DNA of 64,000 nt from Macrostomum lignano. Its lineage: Eukaryota. The first letter of the stretch is position 1. Each line of letters begins with the position of its first letter. A program made the translations under genes and the position numbers. This document shows positions 20,412 to 24,400 of this stretch, piece after piece. The notes beneath the pieces were generated by a model. The model was not told the DNA's origin and did no database searches. It saw nothing but the letters and a program-made list of their open reading frames with translations. Location: assembly GCA_002269645.1 (NCBI GenBank), contig NIVC01003188.1:1-64000 (forward strand), in the 5' to 3' direction.

Positions 20412-20673
20412 ATGACGGTCTCCTACAGTGAGACAATCTCCAGCAGCCAGGGCGGCGTCTTCATCAAGATCCTGCTGCTGTGGAAGGGCAGCCTGTACAA
20501 ACTGCTGTACACCGATCTCATAGTGTACCTGATAATGTACTACGCATTCAATATCATCTACAGGGCCTGCATGGGCCCCGAAGCCAGACAGAGCTTCGAA
20601 TTGGTGGTGAAATTCTGCGAGGAGATGGACAAGAGCATCCCGCTGTCCTTTATCCTCGGCTTCTTTGTGGCCG
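20412..20673 (+). CDS. Bestrophin first coding exon 1a (alternative first exon or duplicated remnant)
   Basis: [45 protein letters not shown] matches the bestrophin N-terminus; donor G|GTGAGT, phase 1. Confidence 0.85.
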
Positions 20674-21417
20674 GTGAGTAGCTGTCTCAATATTGCTAGT
20701 CTTCTACTCTCGTCTCTAAGTGTCTTTAACACCCGCGGGTCACAGCGCATTGATTTCCACGTGCAGCCTCTAATCAATACGATCTACCGGTGAATAGTGA
20801 TACAGCAGTGCTTCTGTGAACTTTCAAGTCTTGGAGACTGAGCTGTGGAAAGTAAAACAAAATGCATAGACGTGCTCATACGCGTTTTAATTGCATCGCA
20901 TCGCTCTATGTACGCACGTGACCCCACAAAGCCTGCAGCTGAGTTTCAGGGGTCAGGAGTACTCAGGAGTGTGAGAACAAACGGAGAGAGGGAGACCAGT
21001 TGTGACAAGCACAATAAATTCAAGGCGGTTAGCAGTTGAGGGAAGCCCTGACCTGAGCTGAATCCCTATTGAGTGCGCCTTATCTCACAGTTGCTATGCG
21101 AGGGATTCTCTACTCCATTGTAGTACAGCTCTATTTTGCACAGCGGAGTCAGGACCGGTGTGGAATCAATAGAATACCAACTCAAACTCAACAGTGCTTT
21201 TCTTGTACGCTCGAAATGGAGCGCGGAAGAGAGAGCGCAAACGGCTGCGGGGAAGAAATCCCCACTAATCTACCATTCTGGGGTATTGCAAAAAACCCTT
21301 AGGTGAGGAGAAGCAGGAAGAAGGTGGAGTGAAAGACAAACACAGCTCAGGTCCTTTTCTTGAGTCCGCCAGCTAGCAGAGCAGCTTTAGCTACAGCTGG
21401 TAGCAACAGCAAGCAAG

Positions 21418-24400
21418 ATGCCACCAGTGCAGGGTTCTTACGCAAGGATTGTGTCCACCAACACGAAGTGCGTCTTTGTCAGACTGCTGACAATCTGGCG
21501 GGGCAGTCTGTACCGCCTGCTGTACAGGGAGCTGCTTGTCTACCTGTTAATTTACACCGCAATCAGCCTGTGCTACCGACTGCAGCTGTCGCCAACAGCC
21601 AGGCACACATTTGAGTTGTCGGTTGTCTTCTGCGGCCAGATGGACAAGGGCATACCGCTGTCTTTTATTCTCGGCTTCTTTGTGGCCGGTGAGGCTGAGG
21701 ATTCGGGTCTCGGGATTCGGGTCTCGGGATTCGGGTCTCGGGATTCGGGTCTCGGGATTCGGGTCTCGGGATTCGGGTCTCGGGATTCGGGTCTCGGGAT
21801 TCGGGTCTCGGGATTCGGGTCTCGGGATTCGGGTCTCGGGATTCGGGTCTCGGGATTCGGGTCTCGGGATTCGGGTCTCGGGATTCGGGTCTCTGGATTC
21901 GGGTCTCGGGATTCGGGTCTCGGGATTCGGGTCTCGGGATTCGGGTCTCGGGATTCGGGTCTCGGGATTCGGGTCTCGGGATTCGGGTCTCGGGATTCGG
22001 GTCTCGGGATTCGGGTCTCGGGATTCGGGTCTCGGGATTCGGGTCTCGGGATTCGGGTCTCGGGATTCGGGTCTCGGGATTCGGGTCTCGGGATTCGGGT
22101 CTCGGGATTCGGGTCTCGGGATTCGGGTATGATAGGATTTGTACTGAGATTTAGTCTCAGTTCTCGGATTGGAGCAGTGCACTGAGCGGGTCACGAATTC
22201 TGCACAGATCGGGGATCAGGGGGCGGGAATTAGTTAGCTGTGAGCATAGTGTCAATGCAGACTAATACAGCCTCTGTCGCCTCTCAACATGACGCCACTG
22301 AACCGTTAACGCTGCCATCGTGCTCAAGACTGAGCTGGAGCGGGCACGGTCGCCCATAGCGGCTGCTGGCCTGAGCTCAATTCCAAGTGCCCCGGCCATT
22401 CAACATTGATGAGGCATTTGGCACGGCCTAACGCCCTGAATGCTGACCATGCAATAAGTTCCCGTCTGCGTGTCACGCACTCACACGTAGAATTACTCTG
22501 ATGCACCTGATCCCCTCAGGCCCCTCCCCATCCAGACTCAAAATTCAAGGATGAATTCCTTGTGATCTTTCTAAGAGGTACTCTTGTCGTACGTTCCTTG
22601 CTAGTTTCGCAAAACCAAGTGCTCTAGTGTTTATAATCCCAACCCGAATCCCAACCCGAATCCCAACCCGAATCCCAACCCGAATCTCAACCCGAATCCC
22701 AACCCGAATCCCAACCCGAATCCCAACCCGAATCCCAACCCGAATCCCAACCCGAATCCCAACCCGAATCCCAACCCGAATCCCAACCCGAATCCAAACC
22801 CGAATCCCAACCCGAATCCCAACCCAAATCCCAACCCGAATCCCAACCCGAATCCCAACCCGAATCCCAACCCGAATCCCAACCCAAATCCCAACCCGAA
22901 TCCCAACCCGAATCCCAACCCGAATCCCAACCCGAATCCCAATCCGAATCCCAACCCGAATCCCAACCCAAATCCTAACCTGAATCCCAACCCGCATCCC
23001 AACCAGAATCCCAACCAGAATCCCAAAGATTCTGATACCAAACTCTTTAAGCACTTTAAGCCATATACTAGATAGCAAAATCAATCGCAGATGATCGAAT
23101 AACTTACAATCCAATGTGCACTCCCACCCGCTCTCTCACCGCAGGCGTGATCGGCCGCTGGTGGCAGATGTACCTTAACATCCCCTGGCTCAATCGCATA
23201 TCGTTCTTTGCCTACGGAATTCTCACCGGCACGAAGGACTCGTTTGAGACGGCCCGCCGGCTAAGGCTGAGCATCATGCGCTACATGAACCTGGGCTGGA
23301 TCCTGCTCATGCACTCCATCTCCGAGCAGATCATGCATCGCTTCTCCGGCCAGGAGGAGGAAGAAGTGAGCAATTGTTTTACTTTTTTAACTGAAACTTC
23401 AAGAGTATTTGCTGCGTGTTTTCTCTTTGAAGGATGTTTACTTGATGTTCGTGCTTTTTAATTAACTCACACCCTGTACTTTCCCAGCCCTTCGCTCCTT
23501 CAATCAGGTCACAGCCTGTACTTTCCCAACCCTTCGCTCCTTCAATCAGTTCACACCCTGTACTTTCCCAGCCCTTCGCTCCTTCAATCAGGTCGCACCC
23601 AGTACTTTCCCAGCCGTTACTTCTTAATCCCTCTTGCTGCCCATTGTTTTTCTACCATTTAGCCTCATGCGCAAGTCGCCATTGTCTCCATTGTCTGTAG
23701 TGACCAGAGCAACTGCAACGAATTACGGAAGACTTTCGTGCTCCCAGAATGCAGGATTTAGCACGGAATTACATAAATCAATCAACCAACAAATCTACAT
23801 AGACAGACCCCCCCTCGCAGCAATACAAGCATAGACGAAGTTCTCGTAATTAGCTAATTAGGATGCAAGAGTGGCCCCCTTTAATGCTTGTACCAACTTA
23901 GTTATTTATTAGTTCTTTTGAGATCGGCAGCTCACTATAGAGAGAAAGAGGGCTCCGTGGCTTCTATGCGGCCTTGATCCCAGTAGTTGATAACTTCCTC
24001 CACGTTGAAGGAAAGAAATCATACTGTAGAATGTGAATTTCAACTATTCAATGTGCCCATGCCTAGCAGGCCATTGACTAATCAATAACCAGCTCGCCGT
24101 TACCCACCCCATACTGTTCCACTCGAAATCCGTCACTTTTCAGCCGCAGTCAAAGTCCAATTTGGTGAGTGACAACAAAAGGTCGGATTTGCAGTTTCAA
24201 CTTCCCATAGCAACTGATGATTTTAGCTGGTAGTCTGTCAATGTTTCTCGTCTATTTATTTAATCCCCTGCTGCCATCAATATCAGCCGTAGCAGTAGCA
24301 GTCTATCCACCTAATCAGCGAGCAAGCTTTCCCGTTTACTTGGTTGCGGTCAAATTATATATTAAATTTCTTAAGAACTTGACACATAACTTTCCTCAAT

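Follow-up and report, generated by a model that had tools for sequence, protein, structure and literature searches.

In a stretch of 64,000 nucleotides of Macrostomum lignano DNA (assembly GCA_002269645.1, contig NIVC01003188.1, positions 1 to 64,000; in the following, the window), the bestrophin gene Mlig000907 has its first coding exon duplicated in tandem. The two copies, termed e1a (20412-20673) and e1b (21418-21688), precede one shared exon 2 (e2, 23145-23365). The major form, e1a, is conserved. e1b evolves fast but bears the sequence marks of past purifying selection, and both copies look kept by selection. In our view, e1b is probably an alternative first coding exon maintained by selection, and the gene probably makes two subunits with one pore. 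Each mature mRNA would then contain one of the two first exons, spliced to the common exon 2. The resulting subunits of 524 and 527 amino acids would have the same pore-lining end of the second transmembrane segment (TM2), the same cytosolic body and the same acidic cluster of the Ca2+ clasp, and would be unlike each other in the N-terminal arm, in TM1 and in the loop between TM1 and TM2. Messages including both e1a and e1b would mostly destroy themselves through premature stops. Mixed pentamers of the two subunits are speculation.

Both first exons lie on the forward strand, like all exons of the gene. e1a runs from its ATG to a phase-1 donor (G/GTGAGT) and encodes residues 1-87, beginning with MTVSY (translation of 20412-20672), plus the first base of Gly88. 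e1b likewise runs from an ATG to a phase-1 donor (G/GTGAGG) and encodes 90 residues, beginning with MPPVQGSY (translation of 21418-21687), plus the first base of a Gly codon. Its donor agrees with the M. lignano consensus GT[G/A]AG (PMC8629364). Exon 2 is preceded by a pyrimidine-rich acceptor (...caccgcag), followed by GTGAGC after 23365, entered in phase 1 and left in phase 0. Both first-exon donors are phase-1 GTGAG sites, compatible with this one acceptor, and the two exons are adjacent homologues of the same phase, as expected of alternative first exons from tandem duplication. A preliminary description of the locus had proposed two ATG-starting first coding exons with a common phase-1 donor end and a single exon 2 at 23145. 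All of its positions and features hold to the base, and the shared donor phase and the single exon 2 are borne out by translation and splice-site reading. Its statement that both exons are intact was also right, as the frames are open, with no stop and no indel in the 84 aligned codons.

Both spliced products are bestrophins. They match the Pfam family Bestrophin (PF01062) with 285.6 bits (E = 6e-85) for the e1a form and 270.2 bits (E = 3e-80) for the e1b form, at a cut-off of 24.2, and both match the human and chicken BEST1 structures with E values of the order of 1e-63, such as 4e-63. Since both products align to human BEST1 over residues 1-88 without a gap, BEST1 numbering can be used directly. 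Among 85 positions, 35 are identical to human BEST1 in e1b and 31 in e1a. The neck positions I76, F80 and F84 are present in both exon-1 copies, and the acidic cluster in exon 5 (30737-30844) aligns to NPFGEDDDDF of the human protein. On the basis of the known BEST1 structures, we take the former to form the neck and the acidic cluster after NPFG to belong to the Ca2+ clasp. With the animal bestrophins in general (BEST1-4; PDB 8d1o, 4rdq, 6n26), the products have in common the PF01062 match, the gap-free alignment of residues 1-88, I76/F80/F84, the acidic cluster (DDDEDF) and the predicted helices. In contrast, neither the 120 best homologues nor the literature search yielded another bestrophin with duplicated alternative first coding exons, and the isoform diversity found there sits elsewhere in the protein. 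Isoform pairs differing only at the N-terminus were not present among the 120 homologues, which contained such pairs only as cross-species orthologues.

The two exons differ strongly, but not everywhere. In total, 87 of 253 nucleotides and 38 of 84 aligned codons differ, without an indel (55% amino acid and about 66% nucleotide identity). The last 13 residues, neck positions included, are identical. By BEST1 residues, the identities are 7/22 for 4-25, 7/8 for 26-33, 7/17 for 34-50, 4/10 for 51-60, 9/15 for 61-75 and 13/13 for 76-88. The earlier claim that the exons share the neck and differ in the N-terminus, TM1 and the loop is therefore confirmed by the segment identities. The boundary between exon 1 and exon 2 lies within the helix that bears the neck residues. 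AlphaFold predicts N-terminal helices at 5-10, 16-26, 29-53, 56-75 and 78-98 for the e1a form and the same five helices, offset by three to four residues, for the e1b form. The confidence over TM1-TM2 is equal (predicted local distance difference test, pLDDT, 85-92 for e1a and 80-94 for e1b).

The duplication is not an artifact of the assembly. A tblastn search of the window returned exon 1 exactly twice and exon 2 once, and the e1a-e1b-e2 layout is found on three separate contigs, namely in the window itself (locus L005, the locus of protein P0121, with an offset of 10412) and in the loci L003 and L004, which are collinear with it and about 95-98% identical in unique sequence. e1b is intact in all three gene copies, with the same 91 residues and one synonymous difference. 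As e1a and e1b differ at 87 of 253 bases, they cannot be an assembly duplicate, which the preliminary description had named as a possible refutation; the exon divergence and the identical layout on three contigs rule it out.

Two paralogues lack the duplicate. The paralogues at L001 (Mlig007515) and L002 (Mlig016709), whose proteins are 64-70% identical, have a single e1a-type exon 1 (82-84% amino acid identity to e1a), and no e1b-like match was found in these loci even at E < 1. With the Nei-Gojobori method, the synonymous distance (dS) between e1a and e1b is 0.74, not above the values between e1a and the paralogous first exons (0.87-1.14). The nonsynonymous distance (dN) is 0.395, compared with 0.11 for e1a and the paralogues. 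Outside the exons, alignment is possible only for the roughly 20 nt that precede the ATG and for the downstream GTGAG donor. A derivation of e1b from another paralogue was considered and appears unlikely, as the lowest dS is to e1a and the minisatellite downstream of e1b matches that of L001. The final 13 residues of the exon are also identical in the L001 and L002 paralogues; only a distant paralogue on the minus strand of L002 differs (IPLSFLLGFFVSG). This latter exon (L002 3468-3731, 57% identical to e1a) belongs, as exon 1, to another bestrophin gene that is apparently unannotated and lies upstream of Mlig016709 in divergent orientation.

Directly after exon 1 of the paralogue Mlig007515, at L001 10278-10610, there is an array of GATTCGGGTGA (x30), which is related to the minisatellite after e1b. 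Because of this array, the satellite of intron 1 should be older than the split of the paralogues, and because the array after e1b matches it, e1b should occupy the ancestral position. Judged by position, then, the upstream copy e1a would have retained the ancestral sequence, and the downstream copy e1b would have diverged.

The pattern of change in e1b is far from random. Measured against the majority ancestor of e1a-type exons, the ratio of nonsynonymous to synonymous rates (dN/dS, ω) is 0.62 for the e1b lineage (bootstrap 95% interval 0.33-1.11) and 0.12-0.19 for e1a-type lineages, and the e1b lineage evolved about five times faster. dN/dS between the exons had been suggested as a check in the preliminary description. 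Taken alone, the outcome is borderline, since the e1b value is below 1 but its interval spans 1. For comparison with neutral decay, 87 random substitutions with the observed transition share were placed on e1a in 20,000 simulated copies. Only 7% of the copies (~1,400) were free of stops. These had 51.3±3.0 amino acid changes (minimum 40), compared with 38 in e1b, and BLOSUM62 scores of 125±21 (maximum 197), compared with 254 for e1b. With a hidden Markov model (HMM) built from 96 non-Macrostomum bestrophin N-termini, they scored 20±9 bits (maximum 53.5), whereas e1b scored 92.3 bits, e1a 106.2 bits and the paralogues 102-106 bits. None of the ~1,400 copies reached e1b by either score. The BLOSUM and amino acid change results persist without the near-identical 3' end.

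Further features agree with the simulation. Among 13 non-Met exon-1 residues that are invariant in 29 diverse bestrophins, e1b retains 12, and the thirteenth is a change from K to R. Its substitutions are conservative in kind. Indels between the gene copies occur at about 0.06-0.5 per substitution, as against none in the 253 nt of the e1a/e1b alignment. GC content at third codon positions (0.72 in e1b, 0.75-0.91 in other exons, 0.48-0.51 in introns) does not discriminate between a maintained and a decaying exon at this divergence. For both exon copies, purifying selection is thus indicated by the simulation, the BLOSUM and HMM scores and the invariant residues, and ω alone is borderline. From the simulation, the HMM, the invariant residues and the predicted helices, we conclude that e1b has probably been translated as a bestrophin N-terminus during all or most of its existence.

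The use of e1a is documented by annotated proteins. P0121 (524 amino acids, BOX15_Mlig000907g3/g5) is identical to the e1a model once the 90-nt exon 27563-27652 is added, and e1a is also used in P0001, P0002 and P0122. The transcriptome behind the GenBank annotation was RNA-seq-guided (PMC5730564). Given this guidance and the identity of P0121 with the e1a model, splicing from e1a to exon 2 is transcript-supported, as the preliminary description had anticipated. The annotated copies on L003, L004 and L005 are numbered g1, g3 and g5, while the numbers of the paralogue copies run on without a gap (g1, g2). The original transcriptome may contain models g2 and g4 that were not submitted, and these could represent alternative forms.

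Several observations weigh against a functional e1b. Database searches found no transcript, expressed sequence tag (EST)-derived model or protein with e1b, and the exact e1b isoform (527 or 497 amino acids) is absent from the protein collection. The start is of the e1a type in all eight database proteins that were read, from the clusters of the gene and its paralogues, and all three annotated gene copies use e1a. By itself, the ω of e1b is not significantly below 1, with the interval reaching 1.11, and the differences between e1a and e1b are spread 28/23/36 over codon positions 1/2/3. Among the three gene copies, there are 2 synonymous sites in 533 exon nucleotides and 10 variable columns in 744 intron nucleotides, too few differences to show present-day constraint. 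When 1.84 billion representatives were scanned in full by HMMER with e1b as the query, nothing exceeded 50% identity. A word-index protein search with the e1b peptide yielded three candidates and no match, but it also missed the e1a proteins of the gene itself, which have 27 residues in common with the query, and is therefore uninformative. Hits to two stretches in P0131 and P0146 were rejected as exon duplicates, as they represent fused models of tandem genes. The literature searched contained no mention of Mlig000907 and no relevant link of bestrophin to mutually exclusive exons.

Some of these points would be expected if e1b were an unused relic, a silent pseudo-exon in intron 1 that is unbroken by chance or was silenced recently. 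The missing protein, the wide interval of ω, the nearly even spread over codon positions, and the fact that the paralogues manage without e1b all fit. Nevertheless, we regard a relic as unlikely. At 34% nucleotide divergence, neutral decay leaves an open frame in only the small simulated fraction given above, and none of the stop-free copies reached the observed BLOSUM and HMM scores. There is no indel in 253 nt, while the flanks have become unalignable, and e1b retains its ATG, donor and phase as well as the 12 invariant residues. A protein with both exons, joined through an in-frame acceptor after 21403 or 21409 and having a duplicated N-terminus, TM1 and TM2, is extremely improbable. Two of the 23 AG sites before e1b do stay in frame without a stop, and two extra transmembrane helices would preserve membrane orientation. 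However, both sites are without a pyrimidine tract, annotated transcripts join e1a straight to exon 2, and a pentameric pore presumably has no room for a second neck helix, to judge from BEST1 structures. A maintained alternative exon e1b remains the reading that we prefer, and the question is then how its mRNA could arise.

Candidate routes to an e1b mRNA are a promoter of its own, spliced leader (SL) trans-splicing, or a shared 5' exon. The SL of M. lignano is 35 nt long, ends in ...TTGCATG, is present on about 30-39% of genes and is added at the acceptor motif YTNCAG (PMC8629364; PMC5730564). No SL sequence or SL gene is present in the window. The hexamer CTACAG at 21391-21396, 21 nt before the e1b ATG, fits the motif and is a hypothetical trans-splice acceptor with a weak pyrimidine tract (0.40). 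The terminal ATG of the SL, if joined there, would be in frame with e1b and would add MLVATASK. The stretch without ATG before e1b measures 199 nt. Upstream of e1a, TTCCAG at 20282-20287 (124 nt before the ATG) also fits the motif. This candidate 3' splice or SL trans-splice acceptor follows a long pyrimidine tract (pyrimidine fraction 0.75), and by eye, the preceding 290 nt show no GTRAG donor. Just upstream of both ATGs, about 20 nt are still similar (TAGCA..GCAAGCAA). At 20111-20187, motifs read by eye form a candidate promoter-like cluster on the forward strand (CCAAT 20111-15, GACGTCA 20120-26, GGGCGG 20129-34, TGAGTCA 20181-87), to which we presumptively attach a promoter meaning for e1a. 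The 480 nt before the e1a start (19932-20411) contain no ATG, where about 7 are expected by chance, which would suit a long leader or outron in which upstream starts are avoided.

Transcripts that start upstream of e1a carry its donor in cis, and of the 23 AG acceptors within 118 nt upstream of e1b, 21 give a premature stop when joined to this donor. A separate start is therefore the simplest route to e1b, and we infer that such a start within the 744-nt interval between e1a and e1b, with or without SL addition, is the most likely one. Use of both exons from one promoter is possible but doubtful. It would require either an upstream non-coding exon that chooses e1a or e1b, or SL trans-splicing before e1b on a long pre-mRNA. 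The frequent M. lignano SL with its terminal ATG, the YTNCAG candidates (TTCCAG with a strong pyrimidine tract, and CTACAG in frame with e1b) and the similarity persisting before both ATGs speak for such an arrangement. Yet acceptors with a donor upstream in cis are normally cis-spliced, according to the text of PMC8629364 that cites Conrad et al. (1993), joining e1a to CTACAG leads to a premature stop, the pyrimidine tract before CTACAG is weak, and no upstream exon is known.

The intron between e1b and exon 2 contains two complementary minisatellites on the forward strand. The first, GGATTCGGGTCTCG (x30.7, 21699-22128), begins 10 nt after the e1b donor and forms the 5' arm of a predicted hairpin. 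The second, AATCCCAACCCG (x32.7, 22635-23026), forms the 3' arm and ends about 118 nt before exon 2. The 11-nt cores of the two arrays are mutually reverse complementary, and the core GGGATTCGGGT does not occur elsewhere in the 64-kb window. Folding of the whole intron predicts a hairpin of about 30 helices with a minimum free energy (MFE) of −820 kcal/mol, which would set the e1b donor beside the exon 2 acceptor. Both arrays are found in all three gene copies, with variable unit counts (30.7/32.7, 8.7/25.7 and 74.7/13.7).

Complementary intronic elements that could bridge splice sites are also a feature of docking/selector pairs and competing RNA structures (PMC6071210, PMC9013439). Docking/selector pairs use short conserved boxes, however, whereas the arms here are minisatellites of about 30 units each, with a copy number that varies among gene copies. 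Unlike in competing RNA structures, no competing second partner was seen for e1a. The arm layout also resembles a foldback-type repeat. The hairpin may affect exon choice, or it may be just an inverted repeat derived from the ancestral satellite of the intron. A more elaborate scheme, in which first-exon choice would be set by the hairpin bridge together with SL addition at CTACAG, the leader AUG being in frame, and in which the two one-pore subunits would co-assemble or sort into cell-specific pentamers, strikes us as very unlikely.

The arrangement in Mlig000907 resembles known systems of variable first exons. In UGT1A, variable first exons are joined to constant exons (PMC9013439). As in UGT1A and the clustered protocadherins, there are tandem first coding exons that each have an ATG and a donor of their own, one downstream acceptor and a shared body. 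The differences are that Mlig000907 has only two copies, that the variable part is the N-terminal arm, TM1 and loop of a channel instead of a ligand-binding or adhesion domain, that M. lignano has SL trans-splicing as an additional possible route, and that separate promoters are putative here.

There is also a resemblance to mutually exclusive exons, such as those of Dscam and CaV/NaV (PMC5740500, PMC9013439). These, too, are neighbouring homologues of near-equal length and the same phase, their double inclusion mostly breaks the frame, and the minor copy is the faster-evolving one. In the classical case, the exons are internal, each with an acceptor and a donor, whereas e1a and e1b are first coding exons with no known shared upstream exon. 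Surveys of mutually exclusive exons have put 5'-terminal candidates that begin with Met into a class apart, used via alternative promoters (PMC5740500). An alternative first exon formed by tandem duplication is a familiar mechanism. For bestrophins, no precedent was found among the 120 best homologues, in the 1.84 billion representatives or in the literature searched.

If e1b is expressed, the gene would provide a natural domain swap, with the neck, cytosolic body and Ca2+ clasp constant and the N-terminal arm, TM1 and outer loop exchanged. Disease mutations of human BEST1 have hot spots in the first 30 residues and at residues 80-104. In view of the swap and of these hot spots, a comparison of the isoforms could reveal a role of the N-terminal arm and peripheral helix in gating or assembly. 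The locus is also a clean example of uneven divergence after exon duplication, with a conservative upstream copy and a much faster downstream copy in the ancestral position. The consequence is for the annotation of one lineage-specific gene, and M. lignano has several bestrophin paralogues.

The remaining exons of Mlig000907 are exon 2b (27563-27652, 30 codons), exon 3 (28024-28356), exon 4 (29782-29970), exon 5 with the acidic cluster, and exon 6 (33082-33453), which includes the stop codon. The earlier gene picture was correct in the coordinates that it gave, but lacked exon 2b. This exon is part of P0121, P0001 and the paralogues, while the homologous exon is skipped in the paralogue models P0005 and P0127, so that exon 2b may be a cassette exon. 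Long minisatellites occur in every intron of the gene (26266-27496, 28454-29703, 30077-30651, 30964-31364 and 31891-33067), with periods of 14-103 nt and up to 85 copies, and arrays of this kind are very abundant throughout the window. An annotated protein kinase gene (about 37061-43453, minus strand, 541 amino acids, Pfam Pkinase) is convergent with the bestrophin gene and is also the neighbour of both other copies of the bestrophin locus. Within its span, the minus strand at 40498-41560 contains a mariner-type transposase, frameshifted into two overlapping frames of 142 and 264 amino acids.

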